A stretch of DNA of 64,000 bases from Macrostomum hystrix (taxonomy: Eukaryota; Animalia; Platyhelminthes), in the NCBI GenBank assembly GCA_950097015.1, contig CATNEN010000002.1, positions 8,370,001-8,434,000 of the forward strand, given 5' to 3'. The notes below the pieces were generated by a model that saw nothing but the letters and a program-made list of their open reading frames with translations, did no database searches and was not told the DNA's origin. The translations under genes were made by a program, and so were the position numbers. Each line of letters begins with the position of its first letter. Position 1 is the first letter of the stretch. Shown here piece after piece: positions 32,501-63,125 of the stretch.

Positions 32501-35500
32501 TGCCATCGCTCCGAGGGCACGCGAGACAAGTCGGGGTCGGGCTGTAAACTTGCTAATTATGCCCTACTGTCCGGGGGACTTCACCTGGCTGGAGAGTGGC
32601 AAAGGCTGGCAGTCACAGGGGGTGGGCGGACTGTGCCAAGCCTGTAATAACCTGCGACAATTTCGCATTGTTACCTGGTGATTCCCTGCGTGCCTCGAAA
32701 TCTCTATAGCAATTTTAAGACCGACAGGTGGGAAGCTCCGATAGGTAATTTTTGTGGCTATTTTAGCGAGCGATGAGGTCACAGCGTCGCTGTAATTGCA
32801 TCATTTCTACGTAAAACATTCGGTCAGAAATTTTGTAACTCATAAGTTACAAAGATCTGCAATAGCACAATAACCTGCGAGTTAGAGTCTCTTTCAGTTC
32901 GGGTGAGTACAGCTAGACTACCGCCAAATCATTTGGTGACACTAGACCTGCAGCCAGCGAGGAGGCAATTCTGCCCATTCCACTGACCACGAGCACACAC
33001 GCACACAGATACCGTACACAGGCACACGCTCACACAGGTGTGTACATCTGCCTGACTTTCTGCTTAGTGTAAGCAAAGTGTAAGCAAAGGATAATTATAT
33101 GTACTTTGACTTCAGTGCCTTCAGGTGGCGCGACTTACCTCGAACTTCTCCCGCACAAAGTTGCGGCCCAGACAGACAATCTTGAGCGCCACCTCCAGCA
33201 CGAACAGGCCGAGGATGCCAATGCTGACGAAGTGCAGCACGGCAGAGACGTCGTGCAGCAGCTTGGCGTGGCTAAACTCCTGCTGGAAGTTGGCGAACAC
33301 CGACGTCGACTGGGTCCGATTGGCGCCACCGGCAGCCGCTGCGACAGTGACGGAGGCAGCAGCCGCAGCGTGTCGTCGCAACCGCGGTGGCGGCGGTATC
33401 GACGGCGGCCTCGGCGAAGCTGCTGAAGCGGCGTCCGAGCTCCCCCCGGAGGCGGTCACGTTGCAGGTAATGCTGGTGTTCTGGCTGAGTGCCAGCAGCA
33501 CGTCCACCATGCTGGCGGCGAGGCGCTCGGCAAACTGCGGCGACGAAGTCAGCTCGGGGCTGAAGGTCGGCAGGAGGAGGCCGCGCTCGCTCAGCCGACT
33601 GGCGAAGGTGCGATTCACGAACCCCGCCGTCTTGAGGAAGGCCTCCTCCAGTTCCTGCTTCTCGCCTGGTTTGTGCAGGTTTGAGCAGGTTTGAGCAGGT
33701 TTGAGCAGGTTTGAGCAGGTTTGAGCAGGTTTGAGCAGGTTTGTGCAGGTTTGAGCAGGCAGAGGTGCTCTCAGTGGTAAACTTGAAACCCCCGGAGTCC
33801 CCGTCAGAATCCTTGGGTGCCTGGTCTTTGTTCCATTTCTTCTTATTTTCAGTTCTTACAAAGAGTCGATTATCCAGGGTCCTAACACTGATCCCCAACA
33901 GTGCCGATTGTAAAACCAACTTGAAACAGCCATAAATCACCGGATAAAAGGCCTTTAGATCATTATCCGTCGAGGCTGATCCGCTGTTTTCCGATATTTC
34001 TCACTAAGCTCATATTAAACTCTCAGACCGATTTTCATCTGAGCCCGACTCTGAAATCCCTTCAGTCTCAACCAAAGTCCCGATGAAATCACACACCAGT
34101 CGACCCCGCAGGTTGCATTGTGCTTTCCACAGAACTGTGCTTTGCTCTGCCGCGGCTCAGATAGCTGAGCAGATAAGTCTATCGCAACTCAAGCTGGTCT
34201 AGATTAGCAAATTACCTGCTCACCGCTCTCAGGCTTAGAGTTAATCTGCCCCAATGTTGAATTTCTGACTCAAACTGGTTCGCTGATGACGCAAAGTACT
34301 CAAATCTTGACTTCTTGTCTTTGGTCGTGGCTTCTTTAATTTTTATTCTGACAGATTTTTGTGTTGAAAACCGTACCGTGACGAGAGACCTCTCAGATAA
34401 TCTATATTTAGATGTGCTCATGATTTCGTGTCAAAATGTATGCTCTAACTCATCTCTTACCTTACTGAAAGGGAAAGCAGCTTGAAAAAACTAAAAAAAC
34501 TCATCTCTCCCCTGTCCTCTCTCTCACCTGTCTGATATCTCCCCAGTCTCATCTCTCCCCAGTCTAATCTCTCCCCAGTCTAATCTCTCCCCAGTCTCAT
34601 CTCTCTCCAGTCTAATCTCTCCCCAGTCTCATCTCACCCTCCCTCATCTCTCTCCCGTTTCATCTCTCCACTGTCTCATCTCTCTCCTGTTTCATCTCTC
34701 CACTGTCTCATCTCTCTCCTGTCTCATCTCTCCCCAGTCTCATCTCTCTCCCCACTCTCATCTCTCTCATGTCTTATCTCTCCCCAGTCTCATCTCTCTC
34801 CTGTCTCATCTCTCCACTGTCTTATCTTTCCCCAGTCTCATCTCTCCCCAGTCTCATCTCTCCCCAGTCTCATCTCTCCACTGTCTTATCTCTCCCCAGT
34901 CTCATCTCTCTCCTGTCTCATCTCTCCACTGTCTTATCTCTCCCCAGTCTCATCTCTCCCCAGTCTCATCTCTCCCCAGTCTCATCTCTCCACTTTCTTA
35001 TCTCTCCCCAGTCTCATCTCTCTCCTGTCTCATCTCTCCACTGTCTTATCTCTCCCCAGTCTCATCTCTCCCCAGTCCCATCTCTCCCCAGTCTCATCTC
35101 TCCCCAGTCTCATCTCTCACCTGTCTGATCTCTCCCCTGTCTCATCTCTCCCCAGTCTCATCTCTCCCCAGTCTCATCTCTCCCCAGTCTCATCTCTCCC
35201 CAGTCTCATCTTTCCGCAGTCTCATCTCTTCCCTGCCTCATCCCATTGCATCGACTCAGCCATGAGGAGCCAATCTCGAGCTCGGCTAACCACCTGTTAG
35301 AAGCACACTGTACTCACGACATACTCACTGGTAATTGCCTTGATCTCCAGGATGATCTCCGCAATGACGATCACAGCATCGATGAGCACGAAGGCGCACA
35401 GGATGATCTGCACAACGTTGGACCGGATGGCGTACAGCAGCCGCTCCTTCCACCTGAAAGGGCGACCGCGAATTGAGGGGCGGCGACCACGCATCAGGAT

Positions 35501-38500: not shown

Positions 38501-38746
38501 GTAATTGGCGTGGGTGTGACGGCCTCCCAGTCTGGCCTAAGTAGGATAGGTGAACATTGTTACGAGTATCTCGTATCTTCTAGCTCCTATCTGAACCAAT
38601 CAAAATGAAACGACACTCACGACTTTTTCCGTCGCTTTGTGTTCACCGAGCCGATCTCGCTCTGCAGGATGGCCAGGTCGATGTTGTCCTTCTGCAGCTG
38701 CTTGATGAACTTCTTGTTGTTCATCCAGCCGAACTGGTAGGAATAC
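23491..38746 (-). CDS. HVCN1: Hv1-type voltage-gated proton channel, shared (constant) exons
   Basis: Exons 38621-38746, 35329-35801 (S1), 33139-33665 (loop + S2), 31070-31193 (S3-S4), 28454-28569 and 27229-27307 (coiled coil), 24995-25644 and 23491-23577, all phase-consistent. S1 FVLIDAVIVIAEIILE (Asp), S2 LHFVSIGILGLFVLEVALK, S3 IVDAVVIMISFVAD, S4 LLWRIVRVING. No pore domain. Confidence 0.88.
23806..24113 (-). mobile_element. tRNA-derived CORE-type SINE (family B), full length
   Basis: A/B-box head GAGGTTGTAGCCTAGTGGTT..GGTTCGATTCCC, CORE-like body, AT-rich tail, 12-bp TSD TTGTATAGTACA at 23794-23805 and 24114-24125. Confidence 0.9.
24995..25644 (-). CDS. HVCN1: Hv channel exon, long disordered and acidic C-terminal tail
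   Basis: Frame of ORF 24935..25642; acceptor caccgcag, donor gtgagc. Confidence 0.75.
26538..27085. repeat. 32-bp minisatellite CAGACTGACAATATGGGGCCTTGCTCAAACTC
   Basis: About 17 near-identical copies. Confidence 0.96.
27229..27307 (-). CDS. HVCN1: Hv channel exon, end of coiled coil (not in ORF track)
   Basis: ctcttcag|KHILFLEELCRELGAGEEQIANCKPR|gtaagt; phases fit both neighbours. Confidence 0.75.
28240..28406. repeat. 29-bp minisatellite CATTCAGAGGCTACAGCCCATAGACAACA
   Basis: About 5.5 copies. Confidence 0.93.
28454..28569 (-). CDS. HVCN1: Hv channel exon, start of C-terminal coiled coil
   Basis: gtttcag|GLMMHEKQRGEFRIQLQKRARRMSEMKCDSLETERDLQE|gtgggt. Confidence 0.8.
29505..29757. repeat. 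21-bp minisatellite GGGATTCTGTCTTTCCAGTTT
   Basis: About 12 copies. Confidence 0.93.
30601..30922 (+). mobile_element. tRNA-derived SINE family A, near full length
   Basis: Head GGGTGAGTGGCAGAG..GCCTCTCGCACCAAGGTCCCTGAGCTCGATTC; body shared with several other copies in the window. Confidence 0.8.
31070..31193 (-). CDS. HVCN1: Hv channel exon S3-S4 (not in ORF track)
   Basis: atttcag|IVDAVVIMISFVADIVFVKLESTEVSVMVLFLLWRIVRVING|gtaagc. Confidence 0.92.
31818..32168. repeat. 88-bp tandem repeat, 4 copies
   Basis: AGATATGATT recurs at 31831, 31919, 32007 and 32095. Confidence 0.93.
32935..33062 (-). mobile_element. SINE family A 3' fragment (similar fragment at 27374-27460)
   Basis: GAGGAGGCAATTCTGC..GAGCACAC..GTGTGTACATCTGC matches 30800-30920 reversed. 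Confidence 0.7.
33139..33665 (-). CDS. HVCN1: Hv channel exon with extended S1-S2 loop and S2
   Basis: Ends ..LKIVCLGRNFVREKFE|gtaagt (human FFHHKFE). The acceptor at 33666 abuts a 10-bp repeat, so the exact start is less certain. Confidence 0.85.
33666..33757. repeat. 10-bp repeat GTTTGAGCAG
   Basis: About 9 copies directly at an Hv acceptor site. Confidence 0.9.
34500..35245. repeat. CT-rich ~16-bp minisatellite GTCTCATCTCTCCCCA
   Basis: Degenerate tandem array. Confidence 0.92.
35329..35801 (-). CDS. HVCN1: Hv channel exon with S0-S1 (selectivity Asp codon at 35378-35380)
   Basis: RSNVVQIILCAFVLIDAVIVIAEIILEIK versus human [29 protein letters not shown]. Confidence 0.9.
36975..37655. 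repeat. 20-bp minisatellite CAGCTTCGATTCTAAAACTC
   Basis: About 33 copies. Confidence 0.95.
38395..38560 (+). mobile_element. Diverged tRNA-derived SINE related to family B
   Basis: B-box-like GAGTTCGAATTTC and 3' motif GGGTGTGACGGCCTCCCAGTC. Confidence 0.4.
38621..38746 (-). CDS. HVCN1: Hv channel first shared exon (phase 2 to phase 2)
   Basis: cctacacag|xYSYQFGWMNNKKFIKQLQKDNIDLAILQSEIGSVNTKRRKKS|gtgagt; internal ATG at 38724. Confidence 0.7.
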
Positions 38747-45324: not shown

Positions 45325-45593
45325 CCGTTTCGCGCCCTTCTCGACAGTCGACGTCCGTCACCGGCAGCGCCATCTGAGGCGCCGTCCTTACCCGAGACGG
45401 AAGCTTCCGAAGCGGCGGAGGCGGCTGCGACGGTGGACGCGATGCCGTCAGCGGCAATGATAGCGGCCGCGGCGGCCTCCGCCTCCTCCTGGTCCTGGTC
45501 GGTCTCCACAAGGAATACGGCCGCGTTTCTTCGCGCTCGAAACCTGCTCGGCGACGGTGGCGCATTTTTTTCGGCGCTGCGCTGCTTGTCCAT
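45325..45593 (-). CDS. Candidate alternative first exon A of the Hv gene
   Basis: MDKQRSAEK..GRRLSRRARNG, phase-2 donor gtgagc; in-frame stop 16 codons upstream. Confidence 0.6.
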
Positions 45594-47149
45594 TGTGCCC
45601 GAGTGGGGGGAATTTTTCCAACAGGCGCTGCGCCAAGTTCAAGAAACTTCCCAATCGACGCGCATTCGATGCTTTAGCCGTTAGGAAGGCCTGGCCAGGA
45701 TTGGACGGGGCCCAGCGGAGCGATGGATTGGTCCCACATGCTCCCCCTCCGGTGAATAGTTGCTGTAGCGAATTCCTGCCATTCCACTGGTCCCTCCTCA
45801 TCCATGTTTCTGGGTGCCGGCCGGAAATTCCTTTGCCATCCGTGGTCAGAAAGACAGGCAAGCATGAGACTTAGGGGACAAGCGGCCTGGTTTGGGAAAA
45901 CTAAATTCCTAAAAATGGACTTTTTATCGACAATTTCGATCATTCCCACAAAAATGTTGCCAAATCTTCCCGAAAGTGCCAAAATGGACCTCGCAAATCC
46001 TGATGGCTCCCAGCAAAGATCCAGTTATAATCCCCTTGCCAGTAGTGATGGCGGCTCAGGATTGCATTCCTTAGTGGCATTGCATTAGTTGCACACTTTA
46101 ATTGACCATAACAAATGACAGTATCTAAGCTTATGGAAGGACTAACAGCGCGGGTCCTTTGACCCCTGCTGCGCAATCAGACACTTGGCTAAGAACATGC
46201 GCATCGACAGCCTCTTATACAGCCGGACGCTTGGCTGAGGCAGCTGAGGAATTGTTATTTTAAAGTGCAACTTGTTATTTCGCCGTCCGTCTTTTCGCAG
46301 TCCAACATCTTTAATTTAGCCCGTCGTGTTTCCGCGCTAGACATGGCGACGAAAGCCGAGAACCCTTGTGCAAACACTCGGTTACATTGCTGGGTTCGCG
46401 AATTTGGGTGCTTAGCACCCCAACTAGTCCTGACCAGGGACAACTAAATAAAGGAATATTTAGTGGTCCCTAGTCCTGATCCGGTCAGAACCCGCTTATT
46501 GCCGGCTAGTAGTATCGACTATAACTTCTGGGAGACAGTCATGCGCTGAACACACTACTCTCAGAGTTCCTGCAGAACAGTAGTATAACATTCTATTTTG
46601 TCTAGTTTTGCGGTCTAAAATGTACTTCTGATAGCCTTTAATAAGATTTCCGTGAGTTCAAACAACATGTTTCGATTTTAGCTGCAAATTTTTTTTTAAT
46701 TACTAAATTGTCTCTCGCTAGATGCAGGTCGACTGCCACCAAATTATGTTCCAGTGCCCACAGTTCTCACGCGAATATTAATTGCAGTATTGTTCTGTTA
46801 GCATTATGGGAATCAGCAAAATAATGTTGATGGAAATTATTCACAGCCAATCACAAAAAGAGCACTTTAAAATTAATTTTTTGCTGGGTTTTTCATTCCA
46901 AAATAATAAATTCCGTCCCTCTCCTTAGCCACAGCGTCTCAAAACAATTTGAGCTGGGGATAATCTTCCCGGATCCCTAATATTCATAGAGCAGATTCAC
47001 AGTCGAGTCTGCATAGCGGCATGTCGCCCAGCAGACTTAACGCTTGAGGCAGATGGTTTTCAAAGCCTTTTTAACCAACCACAGGGCGACTTCGGGTTAG
47101 CGCCTCCGAGATGCGGAATTACCTACGAAAGGATTTTTTCTTTGTCCAA

Positions 47150-48092
47150 GATCCTGTCTTATCACTCCCCTGTCTCATCTCTCCCCTATCGAATCACTCC
47201 CCTGTCTCATCTCTCCCCTATCGAATCACTCCCCTGTCTCAACTCTCCCACGTCTCATCTCTCCCATGTCTCATCTCTCCCCTGTCTCAACTCTCCCATG
47301 TCTCATCTCTCCCATGTCTCATCTCTCCCTGTCTCAACTCTCCCCTGTCTCAAGTCTCACATGTCTCATCTCTCCCCTGTCTCAACTCTCCCCTGTCTCA
47401 TGTCTCCCCTGTCTCATGTCTCCCCTGTCTCAACTCTCCCCTGTCTCATCTCTCCCGTCTCATCACTCCCATGTCTCATCTCTCCCATGTCTCATCTCTC
47501 CCATGTCTCATCTCTCTCCTGTCTCATCTCTCCCCTGTCTCAACTCTCCCATGTCTCAACTCTCCCCTGTCTCAACTCTCCCCTGTCTCATCTCTCCCGT
47601 CTCATCTCTCCCATGTCTCATCTCTCCCATGTCTAATCTCTCCCCTGTCTCAACTCTCCCATGTCTCATCTCTCCCATGTCTCATCTCTCCCCTGTTTAT
47701 CTCTCCCTTTTCTCATCTCTCCCCTGTCTCATATCTCCTCTGTCTCTTCCTTTCTCCCCTGTCTCATCTCTCCCCTGTCTCAACTCTCCCCTGTCTCATC
47801 TCTCCCCTGTCTCATCTCTCCCCTGTCTCATCTCTCCGATGTCTCAACTCTCCCCTGTCTCATCTCTCCCCTGTCTCATCTCTCCCATGTCTCATCTCTC
47901 CCCTGTCTCAACTCTCCCCTGTCTCATCTCTCCCGTCTCATCTCTCCCCTGTTTATCTCTCCCTTTTCTCATCTCTCCTCTGTCTCATATCTCCCCTGTC
48001 TCATCTCTCCCTTTTCTCATCTCTCCCCTGTCTCATCTCTCCCCTGTCTCATATCTCCTCTGTCTCTTCCTTTCTCCCCTGTCTAATCTCTA
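47150..48092. repeat. CT-rich ~16-bp minisatellite CTGTCTCATCTCTCCC
   Basis: Degenerate tandem array. Confidence 0.93.
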
Positions 48093-48639
48093 GCTTTAAT
48101 AATTAACCTGTCAATCTAGACTCATATATATTTTTCGTCTGCAAGTAAGTTACCATCCATTAGCACCAGAATTTAGACTTTTAAAAGAGTGACTAACTAT
48201 AAGTACTCGTACAAGTGCTGCAAGATTAAATCACCTTTTAAGCTGCTAATACTGAGCAGGTGAGGCGCTGTGCAGTCTAGACACTCTTTATTGGTAATTT
48301 TCTTGCGAATTTTGAAGTGCAACTAATCATGTCTTTGCTTGATATTTCAGACCAATTAATTTTCCAGAGACAAGAAACGTCATAATAGAAATTGGTGAGC
48401 TAGAAACGTAATATTTTTCCGGACGAACTACATTTTCGGAGCCTGAATTTTACAGAAAGAGACTTGCAGTAAAAATATGTGTTAATCTATGAATCGATTT
48501 ATAAAAGTCAGGGCATCACTGTTACTAGGACTTGGTATTTACCATCTAGCCCCTACATGAGTTCTAGGTTTATTTATCATCAATCTAAACTAATTCAGTT
48601 TTTCTCAATCTACATGCGTTCTTGGTCTGTTTGTCCCAA

Positions 48640-48980
48640 TTTACACGAGGTGTTTTTCAGTTTGTCACAGTCTACACGAGGTCTTTGTCAGTTTGTCACA
48701 ATCTTCACGAGGTCTTTGTAAGTTTGTCACAATCTACATGAGGTCTTTGTCAGTTTGTTAAAGTCTACCTGAGGTCTTTGTCAGTTTGTTACAGTCTACC
48801 TGAGGTCTTTGTCAGTTTGTTACAGTCTACCTGAGGTCTTTGTCAGTTTGTCACAATCTACACGAGGTCTTTGTCAGTTTGTCACAATCTACATGAGGCC
48901 TTTGTCAGTTTTTTACAGTCTACATGAGGTCCTTGTCAGTTTGTCACAATCTACATGAGGTCTTTGTCAGTTTGTCATAG
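48640..48980. repeat. 31-bp minisatellite GAGGTCTTTGTCAGTTTGTCACAATCTACAT
   Basis: About 10 copies. Confidence 0.9.
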
Positions 48981-49112
48981 AGATTTTAACCAATTCATGG
49001 GCTAGGTAACCCAGACACTTCAGTGACCCCAGTATTTGTCGTGTCGGGCTTACGACAAAGATTGTACAGCCCCCCCTAGCAACCAATCTAAACCATCGCA
49101 AGAGGGCCTCAC

Positions 49113-49327
49113 TTTCTATTTCGAGTCTCCACAGCCACCGCCTCCTGCCCGCTGGAGTCGCCGGGCACCGCATAGTCCAGGTAGAGACTCCACAGCGACG
49201 CGGAGACGTCGTCAAAGAAGCTGCTATCGGCCGCAGTCGATGCGGACTCGCAAGGTGAGCCACCGCTGCCTCCCGACAGGCTGTGGTTCGAGCCCGACTT
49301 GCCGATTCGACTCTTGCAGGTTGGCAT
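49113..49327 (-). CDS. Candidate alternative first exon B of the Hv gene
   Basis: MPTCKSRIG..AVETRNRK, phase-2 donor gtgagg; strong acceptor at 49438 upstream suggests a non-coding leader exon or trans-splicing. Confidence 0.55.
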
Positions 49328-49995
49328 GAGGGGCCCCGACCCTCGACCTCTGCGGCTGTTTGAGGGCCTCGCTCGGACGCACTCCGGGAAATGAGAGCCG
49401 AGCCCGCGGAGACGGCTTGATGTATGAGGGGATAACACTGGCAAAGCCCGGAGAGGAAATAAGGGGAGAAATCAAAGACGTGGCGACCGTTATACGGGAG
49501 GCCGGGAAAGTGTTTGCGCCGCCTATGAGGGACGGGGAGTGAGGATGGATATGCCGAGAAAGATTGCGCGAGGATTTTATCCCATCTTCTGTGCGTTGGT
49601 CGGCTGTGGATCGCAGAAGGCGATAGAGTGAATGGGAAAATGGGAGTTAGCTTTGGGACTCAGCGCGCCAACCGAAGAAGCTAATGCTAGAGGAAGAGAA
49701 ACGAGATACTGTACACTCTTTGCGTCATGTGCCGCAGACAGCTGCGACTCTGTCCACTGCAGCACCGCGGCAGCTCGGCAGCTCGACCCAAAGCCGGTCC
49801 CCGTCCCATCTCTCTCTGCCATGATTTGTCACTCATTCGTTCCATTTTCGCAGTTGTCTTGGATGACGGATCTGCGGTCAGTTTGCTTGTCTGCGCACAT
49901 TAATGGCAGGCCCGTTATTCTCGTGGGCGGGGACATTGTTGTTAACACCGACTGGCAGGGCAGCTTGGACAAATGTCGCAGTACTACAGTTCGTA

Positions 49996-50300
49996 GAGGT
50001 TGTAGCCTAGTGGTTAGGGCGTCGGACTTACGACTTGAAGGTCGGGGGTTCGATTCCCGACTGCACTGGAACAATTTGTGCCCTTTAGCAAGACACTTAA
50101 CTCTGCATTGCTTCAGTTCACCCAGCTCTTAAATGGGTACCAGCATCAGCTGGGATAACTGAAGGTGGGTGTGGCGCCCCCCCAGTCCGTGGACTGAACA
50201 GCTGTACGCAGCATTCAGATGCGCCGCGCATTAGCTGCGGCTGTGCTGTCGGCTGCAGATCTGACCCAATTGGGGCAGTAATCAATAATTAATTATTATT
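49996..50300 (+). mobile_element. SINE family B, full length
   Basis: High identity to 23806-24113 in the opposite orientation. Confidence 0.88.
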
Positions 50301-51499
50301 AACTATTATTACAGTCCTCAAGTAAGGAAAACATTAGCACCTAATGTGCTTATTATAACCCTAATAAGCAGAATCCTCTACTTTGAGCAGCGATTGGTGC
50401 GTTTTTCTGTCAAGGCATCAGTAGAGACCCATTTCACAGCTAGTTGAACTGGAGCTCAAAGGAGTGAAGTGTTTAGTGTAATTGCTTGTGTGTGTGGGCA
50501 AATGGTCTGTTTCTCCACTGACCACTGTTTTAAACCTTTGCAAACTCTTTGAAAGTCTAATCCGTATGATTAATCCCATTCAAACCAAGGCTTTGCACCA
50601 AAATCCAGAGTGGTCGAATGTTTTTGACTGAGTTAAAGCTAAAAATGTACTTTAGCCTAGGGTATAGGCAATATCCGATTAGGATTAATCAAAAACCTCA
50701 GACCGCGAGTGCTCGAAATTATATTCGCAAAAAAACTCGCGTGGAGATTTCGCATGCCTCAGTGAGAGAGGCCCCTATAGTAGATTACCTTGATGGTCTA
50801 TAATGCTTCCCAAAATCTGCTGCTACCGCCCACGCGCACAACAAGATGACAAAAAACCCGAATAGCTGCCCGTGCAGTGTTCTACTCAAATTTGAGCAGA
50901 AAAACTCACGCTCCGTGCTAGCCTTGCCATTCCTCTCAGCGGATGCAGGAACTCACAGTGGAAAATAGAGGGAGCTCGAGGAGAGTGAGAGAGACGGAGA
51001 GGTCGAAGGCGGGCGTGGGTTGCTGGCGCAGACCTGGGGGCATTATTCTATTTGATTAGTTGCAGCTCTGATTGACTGCCGGGGCAAGTCGGGTCGCCCG
51101 CTACGCTGAGACTGGCTGGTTGGGCACATTGAGCAGGCTGAAGGAGATGTTGATGGAGACAGCGGGCTAGTCAGCAGGGTCGGCTTCACACTGGAGTGCC
51201 CCCAGCAGGAGCGAACCAACGGAGCGTAGGTCGGAACAACGCGCCAATTCTGGGACCGCAGCAAAACGGCTCTCATTATAGTCAAGATCAATGCTGATGG
51301 CCCACCCCTGCTTGCTGCTGCTCTTCTGGTGGAAAACATAAAATTGCATTTCTGTGTTTCCCATTTTTTGGACAACTGGAACGCATCCAGATGTCTTGTT
51401 GGACTGTCTATCGGGATTGATTGAAGTCGATCAGCAGTTTGCAAACGTCTAGCAATGAACTTCCATAATGGACTTCAAAGCTGCTATAGAAAGATAAGA

Positions 51500-51720
51500 T
51501 AGAACTGAAAACTAGCCAAGTTGGACCAGGTTACAGCCAGTCCATGGACTGGGGAGGCTGTCGCACTAACCCGAATTTCTACAACAGTCAATGCGGCTAC
51601 CCATTCCACTGCTGGGTCTATCGTTGAAAATCGCTTCAGTGGAGTAATGAATGGAACCCATGACCTTCAATTCGCGAGTCCGAAGATCTAACCATCAGGC
51701 CTTGATCAGCTGACATACAA
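51500..51720 (-). mobile_element. Diverged SINE related to family B
   Basis: Head GGCCTGATGGTTAGATCTTCGGACTCGCGAATTGAAGGTC and 3' motif CCTCCCCAGTCCATGGACTG. Confidence 0.55.
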
Positions 51721-52479
51721 GCTCTCAGTAAAAAGTAATGAGAAATGTGAGTAATTATTGAGGTGCATATATCCAAAGCTTTTTTGGAAGCTTGAAAAAA
51801 AGCACAAAGAGACTGAGAATACAGAGTCAGTTGGACAATCGCCCTAGTCGATGACAAGATAAAGAGATATTGACGGATCAATGTCAAGGCGAAAGGGCCA
51901 AGGACAAGGCAGTCAGGAATGCAGCCCTCGGGCAGGCCGGGATCAGCTGACAAAACTTTATGAAAAAAACTCGATGATGTTAAGAAGAGGTGCCGGCCCT
52001 AACGATGCCGCTCTGACATTCGGAGGGGGAATTTCGGCTCAATTTTCAGCGTCAGACCCGCAGTCACGGCCTAGGTTATTACGCATTTCGCATTCTCTAT
52101 ACAGCCAAAAAGCCTTGCTAACCCGAGTTCCATAACTTGTACAGCAGTGCGACATAGTGCACTGGCTTGTGAAATGTTGATGCCCTTTTTTAATCAACTC
52201 TCGCATCTTTTCATTCCCAGCAGCAGCAGCTCCGGGTAATTAAAATCGGCTTCTTCGCAGACAAAGAAATCTGACAATTTTCAAGCAAGGAGAAAATTGT
52301 CCGCAAGAACGCAGTGTCGACTATTTTTCTTTCAATGCTCGCAGCACCACCTCTTAAACCAAATTTAGCCATTTTGTTTGACTCAGCTTTGCCTTTTGGA
52401 AAATAAATAAATTATACAGGCTATGAAGTTTGGATAAAGAGAATCAGGGAAAAAAGAACACTTGATTTACGTGTTCAAG

Positions 52480-55060
52480 GATCAGAGATTTGAGGATCAG
52501 AGATTTGAGGATCAGAGATTTGAGGATCAGTGAATTGAGGATCAGAGATTTGAGGATCAGTGAACTGAGGATCAGTGAATTGAGGATCAGTGAACTGAGG
52601 ATCAGTGAATTGAGGATCAGTGAATTGAGGATCAGTGAATTGAGGATCAGTGAATTGAGGATCAGTGAATTGAGGATCAGTGAATTGAGGATCAGTGAAT
52701 TGAGGATCAGTGAACTGAGGATCAGTGAATTGAGGATCAGTGAATTGAGGATCAGTGAATTGAGGATCAGTGAATTGAGGATCAGTGAATTGAGGATCAG
52801 TGAATTGAGGATCAGTGAATTGAGGATCAGAGATTTGAGGATCAGAGATTTGAGGATCAGTGAATTGAGGATCAGTGAATTGAGGATCAGAGATTTGAGG
52901 ATCAGTGAATTGAGCATCAGTGAATTGAGGATCAGAGATTTTAGGATCAGAGATTTGAGGATCAGTGAATTGAGGATCCATGAATTGAGGATCAGTGAAT
53001 TGAGGATCAGTGAATTGAGCATCAGTGAATTGAGGATCAGTGAATTGAGCATCAGTGAATTGAGGATCAGTGAATTGAGGATCAGTGAATTGAGGATCAG
53101 TGAATTGAGGATCAGTGAATTGAGGATCAGTGAATTGAGGATCAGTGAATTGAGGATCAGTGAACTGAGGATCAGTGAATTGAGGATCAGTGAATTGAGG
53201 ATCAGTGATTTGAGGATCAGTGAATTGAGGATCAGTGAATTGAGGATCAGTAAATTGAGGATCAGTGAATTGAGGATCAGTGAATTGAGGATCAGTGAAT
53301 TGAGGATCAGTGAATTGAGGATCAGTGATTTGAGGATCAGTGAATTGAGGATCAGTGAATTGAGGATCAGTGAATTGAGGATCAGTGAATTGAGGATCAG
53401 TGATTTGAGGATCAGTGAATTGAGGATCAGTAAATTGAGGATCAGTGAATTGAGGATCAGTGAATTGAGGATCAGAGATTTGAGGATCAGAGATTTGAGG
53501 ATCAGTGAATTGAGGATCAGTGAATTGAGGATCAGTGAATTGAGGATCAGTGAACTGAGGATCAGTGAATTGAGGATCAGTGAATTGAGGATCAGTGAAT
53601 TGAGGATCAGTGAATTGAGCATCAGTGAATTGAGGATCAGAGATTTGAGGATCAGAGATTTGAGGATCAGTGAATTGAGGATCCATGAATTGAGGATCAG
53701 TGAATTGAGGATCATTGAATTGAGGATCAGTGAATTGAGGATCAGTGAATTGAGGATCAGTGAATTGAGGATCAGTGAACTGAGGATCAGTGAATTGAGG
53801 ATCAGTGAATTGAGGATCAGTGAATTGAGGATCAGTGAATTGAGGATCAGTGAATTGAGGATCAGTGAATTGAGGATCAGTGAATTGAGGATCAGTGAAT
53901 TGAGGATCAGTGAACTGAGGATCAGTGAATTGAGGATCAGTGAATTGAGGATCAGAGATTTGAGGATCAGAGATTTGAGGATCAGTGAATTGAGGATCAG
54001 TGAATTGAGGATCAGTGAATTGAGGATCAGTGAATTGAGGATCAGTGAACTGAGGATCAGTGAATTGAGGATCAGTGAATTGAGGATCAGTGAATTGAGG
54101 ATCAGTGAATTGAGCATCAGTGAATTGAGGATCAGAGATTTGAGGATCAGAGATTTGAGGATCAGTGAATTGAGGATCCATGAATTGAGGATCAGTGAAT
54201 TGAGGATCAGTGAATTGAGGATCAGTGAATTGAGGATCAGTGAATTGAGGATCAGTGAATTGAGGATCAGTGAACTGAGGATCAGTGAATTGAGGATCAG
54301 TGAATTGAGGATCAGTGAATTGAGGATCAGTGAATTGAGGATCAGTGAATTGAGGATCAGTGAATTGAGGATCAGTGAATTGAGGATCAGAGATTTGAGG
54401 ATCAGAGATTTGAGGATCAGTGAATTGAGGATCAGTGAATTGAGGATCAGAGATTTGAGGATCAGTGAATTGAGCATCAGTGAATTGAGGATCAGAGATT
54501 TGAGGATCAGAGATTTGAGGATCAGTGAATTGAGGATCCATGAATTGAGGATCAGTGAATTGAGGATCAGTGAATTGAGGATCAGTGAATTGAGGATCAG
54601 TGAACTGAGGATCAGTGAATTGAGGATCAGTGAATTGAGGATCAGTGAATTGAGGATCAGAGATTTGAGGATCAGTGAATTGAGCATCAGTGAATTGAGG
54701 ATCAGAGATTTGAGGATCAGAGATTTGAGGATCAGTGAATTGAGGATCCATGAATTGAGGATCAGTGAATTGAGGATCAGTGAATTGAGGATCAGTGAAT
54801 TGAGGATCAGTGAATTGAGGATCAGTGAATTGAGGATCAGTGAACTGAGGATCAGTGAATTGAGGATCAGTGAATTGAGGATCAGTGAATTGAGGATCAG
54901 AGATTTGAGGATCAGAGATTTGAGGATCAGTGAATTGAGGATCAGTGAATTGAGGATCAGTGAATTGAGGATCAGTGAATTGAGGATCAGTGAATTGAGG
55001 ATCAGTGATTTGAGGATCAGTGAATTGAGGATCAGTGAATTGAGGATCAGTGAATTGAGG
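52480..55060. repeat. 15-bp minisatellite GAGGATCAGTGAATT
   Basis: About 170 copies with recurring variant cassettes. Confidence 0.97.
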
Positions 55061-55154
55061 ATTTTATAATCCCACATGCAGGTTCGCATGCAAATCTAAA
55101 AAATACTGCTGGTTCAGGCTGGTCCCAGATCCCAAACAGATTTCAAATCCTCAC

Positions 55155-55420
55155 TCGTCCAGCAGAGCCTTCTCGCGCGAATGACTGTGACACGAGTCCA
55201 CCGACTCCGCCCGGTCTCGGCAGTCGACTTCTCCCGCGCCACCGGCGGAGCCGCGGGAGCCGCCGGAGCCGCCGCCAACTGAGGATTGGCCGCTGTCAAC
55301 GCTGGGTTGCCTAGCAACGGCTTGCGCGACCTGGGCTGCCCATTCGCAGTCGGCCCAGTCGCCGCTGCTGCCGTAGCTGCTGCCTCGCAGCAAGTGCTTC
55401 GCTGCCAGCACCTTCGCCAT
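55155..55420 (-). CDS. Candidate alternative first exon C of the Hv gene
   Basis: MAKVLAAKHLL..RQPSVDS..EKALLDE, phase-2 donor gtgagg; in-frame stop shortly upstream. Confidence 0.6.
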
Positions 55421-56459
55421 TGACTCGGATTTATCTTGGCTTAGCTCAGCTCACACAGGCTGTTATATGGGAACAGTTCGACCTGCTCCGGATCCCCTTG
55501 GCCCCTTCTGATTGGCTGTCGCGTTAGCAACTCGCAAATAAATAAACTGTGGCATGTTCGGCTTATTGAGTGCATAAATATGTGATTGCAATCAGGCCGC
55601 ACCAGCTGCACACAATTCTTCCAAATGATTTCCTTTAAGCACCAAAACTGGCTACAGAAGCCACGAGAGGCTCCTCTGTGAAGGAAGCGACACACACTCA
55701 CACGCACTCGCACGAACTCATATTCTCAGTCGGAGCTGCTCGGTCTCAGAGGGCAGGTTCCGACTCTTGTGAGCTGGGAGTTCTCAGTCGCACACAAGCA
55801 GCAAATATTTCGCGTCATTCGATTCGAAAATATGCGCGGAGGGAAATCTGGCACGACTGAGACCGAGAAAGAGGAAGACAGGGAAGGGATTTCTCCTCTC
55901 GGCGGCCGCTGGAGTGGTCCAGCTTCCTTGGCTGGTTAGGGGCACTCAACAACGAAAAATTAAAGGTTCCCAGAGTCTTCTCTGAGCTCGAACTCTCCCC
56001 GGGAGACGGCGAGGGGCGAATTTTTCATACTCAAGTCGAGCCGCAGCTTATAGGCTTGAGAATTTTCTCCAAATCATGGGAGAGCGTGCAATCACCGAGT
56101 CACAGAGCGCTGCGGGGAACCGGGATCGTCAAGTGAGCCTCATCACCATCATGCTGCCCCGAAACTTCAAGAAAATAAGGAAAATGAGGAGTCGGGAAAA
56201 ATTGTCCCCCGGATCACTGGACTCGGATAATTAGCAGGGCGCGTTTGACCCCATGTGACCCACGACCGCAATGTGAACTGCACCCTGCCTCTCGCACCAA
56301 GGTCCCTAAAGCTCGAAAACGCGGCAAAGCAACGTTCATTTGGAGGCTGACAATAAAAATGTCGCAGCAGATGTGCATCCATTTATGAGTGTGGGCCTAC
56401 TTTGTACTGTACGCTCGTATCAGTCTTCGTGTGTGCTCAGGAGACAGCAAAATGGGTAT

Positions 56460-56650
56460 GGGTACGGATACTTTATGCAGGCACACTCACACTGTACATC
56501 TGCCCATGACTTTCTCATCGTCAGGCAGTGTACACTCTCACTGTGCCTTGGAGGTTGGCCCTCAAGGGTGTAAATTGTTCGACAAGCCCCCAAATGAATG
56601 TGGCCTCGCCGCGGAATCGAGCTCATGGACTTTGCTGCCACTCACCTCCT
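56460..56650 (-). mobile_element. SINE family A copy; plus-strand fragments nearby at ~56284-56335 and ~56420-56445
   Basis: Reverse-complement match to the 30601-30850 body. Confidence 0.7.
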
Positions 56651-58089
56651 GCCAGCGCCCATAGCCTTGTGGAAAATGTTTATCTTGTCATATTTAAATA
56701 TTTTCATTGCAGGCCAATTTTTCTGTGATAATTCCTGTTATTTCTACTGATAGTAGACGAATTCGCGTTTAAATTTGTCTCGCTGAATTAGAAACTACGC
56801 GCGGTGATAAATTCAGGCCACAAAAGACAAGAACAGGCTCAGGGTGGGGCAGGGTTGGTCCCAGAAGGCTCGCATGTCGCCAGTGTCATCAATCACTGAC
56901 TGATTGGGAGGCTAAGTAAGGTCGGAGGCTCATCTTTGTGAGGGGGGGCTTGTTTCCAGTGTCGCCAGAATGAGAAAGAAAGAAGCCTGGGTCGTTGCCA
57001 AGCCAAGCTCACCTTTGCTTTGAGCAGCTTTTATCTTCTTTACTTATCTTTGTTCGAGCAGTTTCGATCGCATTCTCATCCCAACAAAAGATGGAATTAG
57101 GTCAATGGCCTGGGGATAAAGAATGGAACACGGGGGGGGTACAGCGCCCCCGTTTGAGCTGAGCTTCCGTTTGCTTCCTTGCCAGCTTCCGGTGCCAGGC
57201 ATTGGTATCGGCTAAGAGTGCACGCAGCATGATGGGCGATAGGGCGAGAAGGCGAGAGCGGGTTGGCGGGACCCTAACGGGAAGCCCGGATGTGTCGCCA
57301 AGAAGCGGCTTTGATGTTTGATGATGTTCTGAGCTTTATACAAACACGGCGACAACAGCGCCGACAATGCTGCCCGCTCGACCAGAAGCTGTGCGGTCAC
57401 GATGAGTTCATCCTCGCCCGTTTAAGACGCTTTTTGTGTGTCTGAGGATTAACACCAGGCGGGCAGTCTGCAGGACCCTGGGCCACTGGCCACAGATTAT
57501 TTCTAGGATTCTAGAATTTCATCATTTTGGTAAACTGGCGCTTCTCACATGTTTCTGTGTTTACTCTCCCAGTTCTCCCAGTTCTTCCTGTTTGCTGTCA
57601 CGATTTTTTGCTTTAAAGTTTGAATTTCTATGTTCAAAGGCTAGTCCAATGATCAATCAAGTATGCTACAGTAAGAAAATGCATCGTCATCTATATATAG
57701 CATCTATATTATGAGCCAAGATGCTATGTATAGATGTCCATGACAAAATTCATGAATGGATTGAGACAGTGGTTTAGGTATTCCAACATAAATAAATAGG
57801 TTTTGGCCATAGAAATAACAAAAAGTTATTCATGATAAACAAATTCATTAATTTAAGACGAATCTCAACGTTGGTCAGGGCCAATTTCCAAGAATTTCGC
57901 CTAGAAAAGTAAGCATAAACTTGGAGTTAATGAGCTGATGTTTCAGCTAGTAATGAGGAGATCAGGATAATTGTCCCCTTAGCAATAACACCGGATTCCA
58001 AATAGTTGGACATTCGATGTAGCTTTTGCTAGCGCGTAAGAGATTATAACAAAATCCCAATATTTTTATCCCACAATGGGGATCCCACA

Positions 58090-58472
58090 GTGTCAGACAG
58101 TATAGTGTCAGACAGGATAGTGTCAGACAGGATAGTGTCAGATTAGATAGTGTCAGATTAGATAGTGTCAGATTAGATAGTGTCAGATTAGATAGTGTCA
58201 GATTAGATAGTGTCAGATTAGATAGTGTCAGATTAGATAGTGTCAGATTAGATAGTGTCAGATTAGATAGTGTCAGATTAGATAGTGTCAGATTAGATAG
58301 TGTCAGATTAGATAGTGTCAGATTAGATAGTGTCAGATTAGATAGTGTCAGATTAGATAGTGTCAGATTAGATAGTGGCAGATTAGATAGTGGCAGATTA
58401 GATAGTGGCAGATTAGATAGTGTCAGATTAGATAGTGGCAGATTAGATAGTGTCAGATTAGATAGTGTCAGA
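58090..58472. repeat. 15-bp minisatellite GTGTCAGATTAGATA
   Basis: About 25 copies. Confidence 0.95.
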
Positions 58473-58903
58473 CTGGAAAATGTTAGTGAGTAGTGAGTGA
58501 GTGATTGAGCACAATGAAAGTCCCTGATCCAAAGAAAGTGCTCGCAATGTTCGGCCCCTTTTGAATGCTTTGATTCCCAAAATCAATCAATAGTTCATCG
58601 CCTTCAAGTGCCAGGCAGTAGGGATCCTTTGGAATTTCAGTGATTTCTCTGACTTCTCGCTTCGCTGCTTCTCATTCAGGATCCGTGTTGGGATGTTAAT
58701 CCCCCCGATTTCTCTAGCCGAAAGACCCGATGGCACGATGGTGGGTGACAAATGGAATAAGTCCGAGTGCAGTCAATCCCATCAAAATCGGGAATCAGGC
58801 ATTTCCGCAGATTTCCTCAGCCCCACCACTTGGCTTGTCCCATTCGCCCGGTTTCCGCGGCTTCTGGCATCTGGAGTGAGGGGGCGGGGATAAAGTGCCC
58901 CAC

Positions 58904-59004
58904 TTCAGGTTGGAATTGAGCGCGCTCTCTCTAATTCGTCTCACTTCTTCCTGCACTTTTGCCAAGTCGCTTGCGCCGTCTCTTGAGCGTGGGCCATGGC
59001 TCAT
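58904..59004 (-). CDS. Candidate alternative first exon D of the Hv gene
   Basis: MSHGPRSRDGASDLAKVQEEVRRIRESALNSNLK, phase-2 donor gtgggg (weaker). Confidence 0.45.
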
Positions 59005-59049
59005 AGCACCGGGCGTCAAAGGATGCCCCCTTCCCAAGGAGGCTGGTCT

Positions 59050-60700
59050 TCCCTTGTCTCTCTCGCGTCTCACCTTGTCTCTCTCGCGTCTCACCTTGTC
59101 TCTCTCCCGTCTCACCTTGTCTCTCTCCCGTCTCACCTTGTCTCTCTCCCGTCTCACCTTGTCTCTCTCCCGTCTCACCTTGTCTCTCTCCCGTCTCACC
59201 TTATCTCTCTCCAGTCTCACCTTGTGTCTCTCCCGTCTCACATAGTCTCTCTCCAGTCTCACCTTGTCTCTCTCCCGTCTCACATAGTCTCTCTCCCGTC
59301 TCACCTTGTCTCTCTCCCGTCTCACCTTATCTCTCTCCAGTCTCACCTTGTGTCTCTCCCGTCTCACATAGTCTCTCTCCAGTCTCACCTTGTCTCTCTC
59401 GCGTCTCACCTTGTGTCTCTCCCGTCTCACCTTGTGTCTCTCCCGTCTCACCTTGTGTCTCTCCCTTCTCACCTTGTGTCTCTCTTCTCTCACATTGTCT
59501 CTCTCCCCTCTCACATTGTCTCTCTCCCCTCTCACCTTGTGTCTCTCCCTTCTCACCTTGTGTCTCTCCCGTCTCACCTTGTGTCTCTCCCTTCTCACCT
59601 TGTGTCTCTCTTCTCTCACATTGTCTCTCTCCCCTCTCACATTGTCTCTCTCCCCTCTCACCTTGTGTCTCTCTTCTCAAACATTGTCTCTCTCCCCTCT
59701 CACATTGTCTCTCTCCCCTCTCACATTGTCTCTCTCCCCTCTCACCTTGTGTCTCTCTTCTCTCACATTGTCTCTTTCCCCTCTCACATTGTCTCTCTCG
59801 CGTCTCACCTTGTCTCTCTCGCGTCTCACCTTGTCTCTCTCCCGTCTCACCTTGTCTCTCTCCCGTCTCACCTTGTGTCTCTCCCCTCTCACATTGTCTC
59901 TCTCCCGTCTCACCTTGTGTCTCTCTTCTCTCACATTGTCTCTCTCCCGTCTCACCTTGTGTCTCTCTTCTCTCACATTGTCTCTCTCCACTCTCACATT
60001 GTCTCTCTCCCGTCTCACCTTGTCTCTCTCCCGTCTCACCTTGTGTCTCTCTTCTCTCACATTGTCTCTCTCCCGTCTCACCTTGTGTCTCTCTTCTCTC
60101 ACATTGTCTCTCTCCCCTCTCACATTGTCTCTCTCCCGTCTCACCTTGTCTCTCTCCCGTCTCACCTTGTGTCTCTCCCCTCTCACATTGTCTCTCTCCC
60201 GTCTCACCTTGTGTCTCTCTTCTCTCACATTGCCTCTCTCCCCTCTCACATTGTCTCTCTCCCGTCTCACCTTGTCTCTCTCATCTCTCACCTTGTCTCT
60301 CTCATCTCTCACACTGTCTCACCTTGTCTCTCTCATCTCTCACACGGTCTCACCTTGTCTCTCACTTTGTCTCTCTCATCTCTCACCCTGTCTCTCTCAT
60401 CTCTTACACTGTGTCACCTTGTCTCTCACTTTGTCTCTCTCATCTCTCCCATTGTCTCTCTCCCCTCTCACCTTGTCTCTCTCACCTCTCACCTTGTCTC
60501 AACTTGTCTCTCACGTTGTCTCTCTCCCCTCTCACATTGCCTCTCTCCACTCTGGCATAATCTCTCTCCCCTTTCACATTGCCTCTCTCCACTCTGGCAT
60601 AATCTCTCTCCCTGTCACTTTGTCTCTATCGCGTCTCACATTATCTCTCCTTTATGACCTTTGTCTCTCTTCCCTCTCACATCGTCCCTCTCCCCTATTA
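59050..60700. repeat. CT-rich 21-bp minisatellite GTCTCACCTTGTCTCTCTCCC
   Basis: Degenerate tandem array. Confidence 0.95.
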
Positions 60701-61537
60701 CCTTTCTCTCAAAGTTTCTCCTACTTCAAACGTAAATAAGTATCTCATGTACCCGCTGGTGACTAATTTGGTTGCAAAAGGGGCGCAAATTCCAGGCAGA
60801 AAACGAAGGTAAACAGCAGTGCACTGGAACTCATGTGCAATTCCAGGCCAAAACAAAAAAATGCCATTAGCCGCAGACTTGTTTTCTTCACTAAAACAAA
60901 ACGAGCTCACTCCAGCCGCTCTTCCTCAAGTTTAGAAAAAATCAACTCAAGCAAGATGCGATTTTGACTCCCTACTGGAGCTCATTTACTGCTTATCTGG
61001 CGCCTCAGAAAGCAGCCTCGCCTGACTTGGCTAGAAGGGTGCGCTCAGATCGGTTTGAGAATAAGTTGTAATTAACTGCAGGGATCTACGATTCATTAGG
61101 GCCAGGTTTACAACCGGCTTTCCTGTTTTGTTGTTCCCGCAAGAAAGCGGGCACTGCATTCTTGGCTGCGCTGATTGATTAACCAGCGACAATTTAACAC
61201 TAGCGGCACAGGTGCTCTGTTGCTAAGGGCTGGTTTAGAGGAAGCTGTCGGACCTGCTCCCGCCGCCTCTTCTCCTGTTCCGGCCTCAAAATGGATGGCC
61301 TGATGATCAGCGAAGCCTGCCCTGGTTTAATTGGTCTCTGCCACTTGAGGCTGAGATAGGCTCTCGTGTTGAGTCTATATTTGTGTCTCCGGGTTTGCTT
61401 TGCCCCATCGTTAAAATTAGTGCGCACTCGAATCTCTGGCATGTACTTGTGTATATTTATCAGCAGATGTCATCCCAAGCAGGATTAGCCTCGAGTTTCA
61501 GGTTTCAAAGGCGTTCAAAAATCGGTGGCAAACTCAC

Positions 61538-61659
61538 TCATCGAGCAGTCCGGACGTGGTGGACGCCGTTCCGGTCATCATCATCTCGCCAGAGTCATCG
61601 CTGTCAACGCTGCCCTGCTTTCTGACAACGTCGCGAATCAGACTCTGCATCGCCGACAT
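61538..61659 (-). CDS. Candidate alternative first exon E of the Hv gene (not in ORF track)
   Basis: MSAMQSLIRDVVRKQGSVDSDDSGEMMMTGTASTTSGLLDE, phase-2 donor gtgagt; in-frame stop 14 codons upstream. Confidence 0.6.
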
Positions 61660-62693
61660 CCTTGAGCTCTGTTTATCAAATGCAGCACTGCCAGGACTTC
61701 ACTGTCAGAGGAACTCCGGATGCTGTGCAGTTTTCGTGGTGGCAGTGCGGTAGCTTTCTTTCACTTGCCAGAATAGAATCCCTAGTGGACTCGTTAAAAA
61801 CTTAGGAGATGGCCGCCTTGACGGCTTGAGAGAAGGCTGGGAGACCCGGGATTGGAAGGGGTTAGACTGACTGGGTGAATTCACTGTCGATTGGAAGCCG
61901 CGACTGTTTGGCGAGTGTTACCATGCGGACCTGGCAACTCAGGGCAGCTGTGCCTGCTAGCCAATGAGCGCTGGCTAAGGATGAAGCACTTTGTGAGAAT
62001 GGCTGAGTGCTTTCATGAGCTCCATGCGCCACTCGAGATGGCACTGACCAAATATGGGAAAAATAAACAAGCATTCGACGGCGCTGCACGCTGCCAGCCC
62101 GACAAGATTTGCTGCGGCGCGAATGAGGGGAATTGAATTTGCAGTCTCAGCTCGCAAGACACAATCGGACAATCAAGAAGTTCTTTTCTAAAGGCATGAG
62201 TAAAAGTCTGCGAGCACAGCAATTGCTTGCTCTGTATGCGCGACATCAGCCGTATGACAAATAGCGCTATTGTGATAACAAGAAATAATGCATTTTTCAG
62301 TAGGTAAAGTAGGTCATTGGTTTAGGCAATTGGTCTGAGAGGTGTTGCAAGCCCTGGGCCTCGAGCACCATTGATCAGAGCTCTTCTGCAATCAGCTAAG
62401 AGCTAGTACTTGTGTAAACCAAAGTTCGAGAAAAAAAACTTATTGAAATAGGCATAAGCCAAGCAAAACTCAAATATAAGTAGCTTTTTCGCATACATTC
62501 TGTTAGTTCGAAAATAGTGCATAAATTACTGTTCTATTAATAGGACATTGTCTTGTAAGTAAAATATATATTGCGAGCCAGGGGGAGGAGGGTCGATTAT
62601 TTAAGAATATCATTATGGGTTGTCCGACATATTATCTGCATACGGTATGAGTATACATATCTCGTGCGCAAATACAAACTCAAAGGCAGGAAG

Positions 62694-62769: not shown

Positions 62770-63125
62770 AGGGTGTTGTAGCCTAGTGGTTAGTAGGGCA
62801 CTCACGACTTTGCATCGGACTCACGCGACTTGAAGGTCGGGGGGTTCGATTCCCGACTCCGCTCTGTAGAAAAAATTTTGTACTTAAACTCTGCTTAAAG
62901 CTTCAAGCAATTCCTGACCAGTCTTTTAACATCAATCTCTATTGCTCAGTTTACCGGCCAGCTGTTAAAGCGAGTACCAGTGTAATCTGGGGGTATTTAT
63001 CAGGGTATGGTGCCCCTAAGTCCATGAACTGAACAGCCGCACGCAGCCTTCAGATGCTGCGTGACAGCTGCGGCTGTGCTATCAGTAGCACGTCTAAGCA
63101 ATCGTGGCATGTATAATAATACAAA
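62770..63125 (+). mobile_element. SINE family B, diverged copy
   Basis: Same head (GGGTGTTGTAGCCTAGTGGTTAG..GGTTCGATTCCCGAC), CORE remnant and 3' domain. Confidence 0.75.

Follow-up and report, generated by a model that had tools for sequence, protein, structure and literature searches.

Candidate alternative first coding exons in the long first intron of an Hv3-like proton-channel gene of the flatworm Macrostomum hystrix

How many different N-termini can a single voltage-gated proton channel (Hv) gene encode? The question is raised by a stretch of 64,000 nucleotides from the flatworm Macrostomum hystrix (GenBank assembly GCA_950097015.1, contig CATNEN010000002.1, positions 8,370,001 to 8,434,000), referred to here as the window. 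On its minus strand, a first-pass annotation had proposed five islands, A to E, as alternative first exons feeding one channel body, and had counted at least five N-termini. This count stands in part. Islands E and C are supported, B is weakly supported and A has signals that are all intrinsic to the sequence, whereas island D and an additional start at the ATG at 38724 are not supported. The reading preferred here is that of one Hv3-like gene in which E and, as alternatives to it, C, B and A would serve as coding first exons spliced to a common acceptor at 38746. We would give this reading a probability of roughly 0.55. On the same evidence, the first intron of about 23 kb very likely holds two alternative coding start exons, probably three or four, and not five or six.

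The channel gene and its first splice junction

The minus strand from about 25,000 to 61,659 is best explained as one gene for a flatworm voltage-gated proton channel of the Hv3-like type. When the exon encoding S3-S4 was compared with all Protein Data Bank structures, only Hv1 chains were matched (5OQK, E=5e-4; 3WKV, E=0.016). A word search with the open reading frame (ORF) of exon 3 led to a fragment from Macrostomum lignano (P0002; UniProt A0A1I8ITQ1). Library and profile searches with this fragment led to a flatworm family named voltage-gated hydrogen channel 1, most members of which carry PF00520. The family includes proteins from Fasciola, Clonorchis, Schistosoma, many cestodes and a monogenean, together with an annelid relative. 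The name given to the fragment in UniProt, 'CaATP_NAI domain', was not reproduced in the Pfam searches. With the flatworm homologues as tblastn queries, exons 2 to 8 were found to be collinear from 38746 down to about 24995.

Several features of the predicted protein bear on its type. The S4 segment reads LLWRIVRVIN, with two arginines and Leu in the first place, and so departs from the three-arginine RxWRxxR signature; this S4 is common to all flatworm homologues. A two-arginine S4 fits the Hv3-like type rather than canonical Hv1 (PMC10377628). The S1-S2 loop encoded by exon 4 is very long and rich in Ser, Ala and Pro, and it contains the N-x-S/T sites NRT, NTS, NVT and NRT. A long loop of this kind is typical of the Hv3-like branch (PMC10377628). 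The S1 segment reads VLIDAVIVIAEIILE, and by eye its Asp lies opposite the Asp of the human S1 segment VLDALLVLAELILDL; judged by this comparison, the selectivity-filter aspartate is present in S1. Pfam holds no family for the motif encoded by exon 2, YxYxxGW..F.KQL.KDNID..L...E, which is conserved across flatworms.

Where does the variable part of such a protein end and the constant part begin? The shared Hv exon had been annotated with an acceptor at 38746 in phase 2, and this was borne out: exon 2 opens with one codon-completing base followed by YSYQFGWMNNKK, and it ends at 38621 with the donor GT at 38620. In all homologues, a short N-terminal segment is followed by R/G-[YF]-x-Y-x-x-[GDSP]-W...F.KQL.KDNID. 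Exon 1 ends on two codon bases both in S. bovis (AG before GTAAGA) and in E. granulosus (GG before GTATGT). Exon 2 then opens with one base, followed by the codons for FEY in S. bovis (AG completed by A) or YNY in E. granulosus (GG completed by G). Trematode and cestode genomic ORFs (P0021, P0049 and P0050) have identical exon-2 limits. This intron keeps its position and phase in S. bovis and in E. granulosus, which makes the acceptor at 38746 the orthologous exon-1/exon-2 junction. Exon 2 is symmetrical, with phase 2 at both ends, and thus could be skipped without a frameshift. Measured from island E to exon 2, intron 1 is 22.8 kb long, compared with 1.1-3.1 kb for the other introns of the gene. 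A sixth N-terminus starting from the ATG at 38724, within exon 2, had also been suggested. The homologues have A, I, L or S at this position, and since the Met is conserved in none of them this start was rejected.

Five islands upstream of exon 2

Which of the five islands are exons? Their annotated coordinates and features were confirmed (Table 1): all lie on the minus strand, start with ATG, keep an open frame and end at a phase-2 GT donor, with a length that leaves two nucleotides after the last full codon. The in-frame stops reported just 5' of the ATGs of A, C and E were found as well. The description of the islands as GC-rich suits A, B and C (GC 0.62-0.69) and is less apt for D (0.53) and E (0.58). 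All five are unique within the window rather than repeats. A Pfam search of all islands and exon pieces gave no useful match and no domain in any island.

Table 1. Coordinates of the candidate first exons, the upstream motifs and the constant exons, in window positions.
Feature	Position	Strand	Description
Island A	45593-45325	minus	269 nt, 89 codons + 2 nt; donor GTGAGC; in-frame stop 16 codons upstream
Island B	49327-49113	minus	215 nt, 71 codons + 2 nt; donor GTGAGG; in-frame stop 49 codons upstream
Island C	55420-55155	minus	266 nt, 88 codons + 2 nt; donor GTGAGG; in-frame stop 11 codons upstream
Island D	59004-58904	minus	101 nt; donor GTGGGG; no in-frame stop within 110 codons upstream
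Island E	61659-61538	minus	122 nt, 40 codons + 2 nt; donor GTGAGT; in-frame stop 14 codons upstream; second Met at 61650
Two CCAATC boxes, A	45699..45731	minus	106-138 nt 5' of the A ATG
TATA-containing 13-mer, B	49487..49499	minus	TCCCGTATAACGG; 160-172 nt 5' of the B ATG
TATA-containing 13-mer, C	55472-55460	minus	TCCCATATAACAG; 40-52 nt 5' of the C ATG
CCAATC box, C	55515-55510	minus	at -95 from the C ATG
Two CCAATC boxes, E	61850..61894	minus	about 190-235 nt 5' of the E ATG; candidate promoter elements
Constant exon 2	38621..38746	minus	126 nt, phase 2 at both ends; encodes YSYQFGWMNNKKFIKQLQKDNIDLAILQSEIGSVNTKRRKK; carries the exon-2 motif found in all flatworm Hv homologues
Constant exon 3	35339..35470	minus	S1 helix, Asp in VLIDAV; acceptor between 35470 and about 35590; tblastn with P0002, P0004, P0009 and P0005
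Constant exon 4	33139..33618	minus	long S1-S2 loop, S2 and start of S3; 5' boundary approximate; tblastn
Constant exon 5	31070..31193	minus	S3-S4, LLWRIVRVIN; Protein Data Bank matches and tblastn
Constant exons 6-8	28579-28454, 27310-27230, 25642 to about 24995	minus	cytoplasmic C-terminal part; tblastn with neodermatan homologues

Island E can be linked to the N-termini of other flatworm channels. A profile hidden Markov model was built from neodermatan Hv N-termini only, with exon 2 excluded, and was run with filters off against the 1,921 six-frame stop-to-stop pieces of the window (91,442 aa). Island E was the sole outlier: two builds of the model gave it E=0.076 and E=0.067, and the runners-up had 3.3 and 2.3. 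The match spans M..MQSLIRDVVRKQGSVDSDDSGE in the island, against KTVDSNNPSEAED in trematodes and PSVVSDESRETDD in cestodes. It is a marginal match, yet strand and upstream location are as required, and the island has an ATG and a consensus donor in the conserved phase. Taken together, these features make E, in all probability, the ancestral first coding exon, conserved with parasitic flatworms. The island carries the tetrapeptide SVDS, to which KTVDSNN of trematodes is related and of which cestodes have looser variants (SVVSDES).

Island C shares these marks with E. Of the four SVDS in the six-frame pieces, two lie in C, one in E and one on the strand opposite exon 5. There are likewise four LLDE, two of which are the last residues of C and of E, right at the donor. 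In their DNA, the two islands have an identical block of 14 nt, CAGCGTTGACAGCG, in the same frame. Their LLDE ends differ at synonymous sites only (CTG CTG GAC GA in C, CTG CTC GAT GA in E), and the second SVDS of C also uses different codons. These shared strings indicate that island C is probably a diverged copy of E that would be used as an alternative first exon; it may otherwise be a decayed pseudo-exon.

The case for island B comes from M. lignano. In P0002, an N-terminal segment of 50 residues is joined to the exon-2 homologue (...RERCG joined to YQYRWLHNKNFIKQLQKDNIDL). Over a 48-residue peptide, this head and the C-terminal tail of a second M. lignano protein, the PIPK-domain protein P0007 (UniProt A0A1I8INT8), have 90% identity. 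Taken from its Met, the M. lignano peptide aligns with B end to end in both local and global mode (z = 3.7-4.7, p = 0.0005-0.002 by shuffling). The same shuffle tests gave no alignment with A, C or D; for A, a collinearity seen by eye was not significant. Island E reached p ~0.006 in global mode only and was not significant in local mode (p 0.5-0.6). Among the 1,921 pieces, B is the top match of the peptide (phmmer E=0.37; blastp without composition adjustment E=0.05). By tblastn, the PIPK gene of the merged M. lignano model is absent from the window, and P0002 was not placed on a contig. This weak similarity to the M. lignano peptide suggests that island B is a likely alternative first coding exon.

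Coding potential adds to this picture. A six-frame codon-usage test was checked by leaving out the known exons in turn, and the true frame won in 10/10 cases. For A, B and C the claimed frame scored best. By the composition-corrected codon score, the pieces containing A, C and E rank 22, 24 and 27 among 754. When candidates in 38.7-64 kb are required to have a positive coding score and a phase-2 donor that fits the consensus, A, B, C and E are left and D drops out. Pairwise similarity between islands was also scored, and of the 15 comparisons B-C (p=0.02) and C-E (p=0.03) stood out, neither of them surviving multiple-test correction. For island A the signals are all of this intrinsic kind, and A is a possible alternative first coding exon, with the odds somewhat against it.

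Island D was rejected as an exon. Its donor is weak, its composition-corrected codon score is -0.06 and no promoter-like motif lies with it. No upstream stop is met because the frame is already open in the 21-bp tandem repeat at 59052-60710 and continues from there. It is very improbable that D is a real exon; a chance ORF is the likelier explanation, and D is left out of the array.

Much of the sequence around the islands is repetitive. Long minisatellite arrays occupy a large part of the first intron, at 39408-40817 (12-bp unit), 42880-43368 (24 bp), 47153-48091 (16 bp), 48595-48977 (31 bp), 52478-55062 (15 bp), 58089-58472 (15 bp) and 59052-60710 (21/42 bp). These arrays run to as many as 172 copies and give very long spurious ORFs on both strands. 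A repeat element of about 300 bp at 49995-50300 has copies at 23805-24114, 19685-19795 and 62812-63083, with identity up to 94%; strings resembling the tRNA T arm in its translations (GFDSR) suggest a tRNA-derived short interspersed nuclear element.

Proposed use of the candidate first exons and competing explanations

How would such exons be used? In the model proposed here, E would be spliced over the 22.8-kb intron to the conserved 126-nt exon 2. This intron is taken to contain further coding exons that begin with ATG, very probably C, probably B and possibly A. Each of these would be used instead of E and would be joined directly to 38746, so that the array would comprise between two and four coding first exons that exclude one another, with transcription, junctions and exclusivity all part of the model. 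All candidate exons are located 5' of exon 2, which itself precedes S1, and the channel body would thus be common to all isoforms. These would differ only in a cytoplasmic N-terminus of 40-90 residues, probably disordered, ahead of the exon-2 motif. If mouse and human Hv1 are a guide, exchanging the head would adjust gating, phosphorylation or localisation of the channel. A stronger form of the model can be drawn, with a true variable/constant array of four promoter-driven, mutually exclusive first exons (E, C, B and A) that provide cell-type-specific heads. This form is doubtful and is put forward only tentatively. To our knowledge, a variable/constant organisation of this kind has not been described for any Hv gene.

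The choice between exons would be made by separate promoters, as suggested by the TATA-containing 13-mer at B and C and the CCAAT boxes at A, C and E. The degenerate 13-mer TCCCRTATAACRG has exactly two copies in the window, which lie 5' of B and C on the correct strand. CCAATC occurs 22 times on the minus strand of the window, and 5/22 occurrences fall within 400 nt 5' of A, C or E. The output of a sigma-70 promoter scan was set aside as irrelevant, the host being eukaryotic.

Could the 5' ends be set in another way? M. lignano has many multi-gene precursors, which make up ~7% of its assembled transcripts, and 38.8% of its genes are trans-spliced (PMC5730564). The alternative 5' ends could be real but be produced by spliced-leader trans-splicing 5' of the ATGs on a long primary transcript, rather than by promoters. 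AG acceptors do lie 5' of the ATG in A, B, C and E, and those at 61668 (E -9) and at 55423 and 55444 (C -3 and -24) are in frame with a putative AUG at the end of the leader. At A, the best acceptor is 34 nt from the ATG, so that a leader AUG would open a different frame, and the TATA and CCAAT motifs 5' of the islands fit ordinary promoters. Trans-splicing as the source of the different starts is accordingly rated improbable, and separate promoters are retained in the preferred reading.

A second possibility concerns how the islands are joined. They could be exons of a single transcript, chained or used as cassettes, that begins at E or farther upstream (E-C-B-A-exon 2 or subsets of it) and uses acceptors just 5' of the internal ATGs; they would then lengthen a single N-terminus and not replace it. 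Candidate in-frame phase-2 acceptors are found 5' of A (45628) and of B (for example 49415, 49355 and 49349), and the frame of B is open for 49 codons upstream. In P0007 of M. lignano, too, other coding sequence runs in frame into the B-like peptide. The pyrimidine tracts at the candidate acceptors are weak, however, and island C fits a chain poorly: a stop lies 11 codons upstream of it, only poor acceptors are found between this stop and the ATG, and the TATA motif is placed 40-52 nt 5' of the ATG. An E-like exon abuts exon 2 directly in all neodermatan proteins. C and E, moreover, both end in LLDE and in the same phase, as would be expected of interchangeable copies. A chained transcript is thus another improbable account of the islands, about on a level with trans-splicing.

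Do all the islands belong to the channel gene? Other open pieces are present in the first intron. Those at 58590-58772 and 46145-46315 (minus strand) have coding-like scores, with ranks 21 and 28 of 754, and lack a phase-2 ATG-to-donor structure; further GC-rich or coding-like pieces lie at 57105-57497 and 44627-44777. Pieces of this sort would be compatible with some islands being first exons of small nested genes on the same strand, which splice to other exons and not to 38746. Against such genes stand the Hv N-terminal motifs shared by C and E, the M. lignano model in which the B-like exon is joined to Hv exon 2, the fit of all four donors to the phase of 38746 and the lack of any Pfam domain in the islands. 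Nested genes are very unlikely.

The remaining question is whether A, B and C are exons at all. Only E may be real, and A-D may be GC-rich intronic islands (old promoters, enhancers or starts of non-coding RNAs, with C perhaps a decayed duplicate of E) whose ORFs and apparent donors are accidental. A number of observations weigh against the preferred reading, and many of them can be claimed by this explanation. The ORF-plus-donor pattern by itself is not above chance: between 38747 and 64000, the minus strand has four phase-2 ORFs of at least 100 nt that run from the first ATG to GT[AG]AG, and the plus strand has three. By construction, the donor GTGAG in phase 2 reads as a TGA in frame, and thus any ORF that ends in G-TGA-G resembles such a donor. 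The same GC-rich islands hold long, overlapping ORFs in several frames. GC3 is high in many of these frames, for which reason it was dropped as a coding test in favour of the codon-usage and composition-corrected tests. The coding scores of the islands (0.02-0.12) are below those of the conserved exons (0.10-0.48), and in the codon-usage test the claimed frame of E only ties with an antisense frame. The profile match of E is marginal when taken alone (E ~0.07). The match of B is lost under composition-based statistics. The peptide on which it depends is the tail of P0007 and the head of P0002, which means that at least one of these automatic models is merged, perhaps from a multi-gene precursor transcript. 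No homologue of island A was found, and 5' of A the possible phase-2 acceptor reported by the first-pass annotation was confirmed as a candidate, with an in-frame AG ending at 45628 that would place the exon start at 45627. Both promoter arguments were noticed post hoc, the clustering of CCAATC as well as the sharing of TCCCRTATAACRG, for which p is estimated at ~0.02-0.03. The protein collections searched contained nothing from this species, and no extra E-type first exon was detected in the first introns of S. bovis (11.2 kb) and E. granulosus (1.5 kb).

Since the pattern alone is not beyond chance, the decision falls to homology, shared motifs and codon usage. Island C keeps two SVDS and an LLDE exactly at the donor, partly by means of different codons. 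Island B is the best match in the window to the N-terminal exon of M. lignano, the six-frame codon test is won by the claimed frames of A, B and C, and an exact TATAA-bearing 13-mer is common to the upstream sequences of B and C. This further evidence raises E, C and B above chance and A more weakly so; D is not raised. That only E is real is therefore judged unlikely, and alternative use of E, C, B and A remains the preferred reading.

Beside these comparisons, some observations were made on the surroundings of the gene and on a related locus. In intron 2 of the S. bovis Hv locus (L002:21784-21888), there is a short open piece (...NKMKSVLSHSFKDLEDKY) in which MKSVLS, the start of the S. bovis Hv protein, recurs with all six residues. 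This piece, ~300 bp 3' of exon 2, may be a partial duplicate of exon 1. In the M. hystrix window, an exon for a laminin-G domain (17446-18042, minus) is located 3' of the Hv gene on the same strand, as are exons of a SWIRM-domain gene (704-856 and 1825-2397, minus; SWIRM and SWIRM-assoc_2, E=7e-19 and 6e-23).

Relation to known systems and significance

As a rule, a single gene with few isoforms encodes Hv channels, and gating in mammals is known to be subject to control by the N-terminus. The statement in the first-pass annotation that no Hv gene like this was known proved too strong, as mouse Hvcn1 makes three N-terminal isoforms (PMC10616795). These isoforms, mHv1.1, 1.2 and 1.3, arise from alternative 5' exons, and their voltage dependence and kinetics differ with the length of the N-terminus (PMC10616795). 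For the short isoform of human HVCN1, enhanced activation has been described (Hondares et al., 2014, as cited in PMC10377628). The N-terminal diversity of Hv is thus already known from mouse and human. The flatworm gene resembles mammalian Hv1 in that one Hv gene would use alternative 5' exons that alter the cytoplasmic N-terminus only. It differs in scale: in mammals the common N-terminus is lengthened or shortened by 4-42 residues, whereas the flatworm gene, in the model proposed here, would swap whole and mostly unrelated heads of 40-90 residues over 23 kb.

The layout of the locus also recalls the clustered protocadherins and UGT1A, with tandem first exons on the same strand, one shared acceptor and matching phase; here C and E would be diverged copies of one another. 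Protocadherin and UGT1A arrays consist of many large and clearly paralogous exons, each of which encodes a folded domain and has its own proven promoter. The flatworm array would have three or four small exons, with A and B showing no sequence relationship to C and E; its junctions and promoters are putative. Another point of comparison is provided by Drosophila Shaker and similar channels, in which a constant voltage-sensor core is combined with interchangeable N-termini that set gating, by way of alternative 5' exons. The N-termini of Shaker act as inactivation balls on the pore, while Hv has no separate pore domain. Shaker belongs to a different channel family from the flatworm Hv.

To the same gene family belong the Hv3-like channels of flatworms and other lophotrochozoans (Schistosoma, Fasciola, cestodes; Aplysia Hv3), with which the M. 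hystrix gene shares an N-terminal exon, the exon-2 motif, a long S1-S2 loop, an LWRxxR S4 and a large C-terminal domain (PMC10377628). In contrast to the array proposed for M. hystrix, the two neodermatan Hv loci examined have a single detectable E-type first exon. If the array is real, its novelty would lie in how many heads are swapped and how large they are, and in a duplicated first exon, in an Hv3-like flatworm channel.

What would such a gene offer? The practical value of the finding is modest pending transcripts. The conserved N-terminal [ST]-V-D-S, with the acidic residues after it, and the conserved exon-2 motif can be put forward as candidate regulatory motifs. If the array is true, its isoforms would be natural chimeras in which the action of the N-terminus on the voltage sensor could be followed, and the duplication of a first exon would be a source of isoform diversity in Hv channels.

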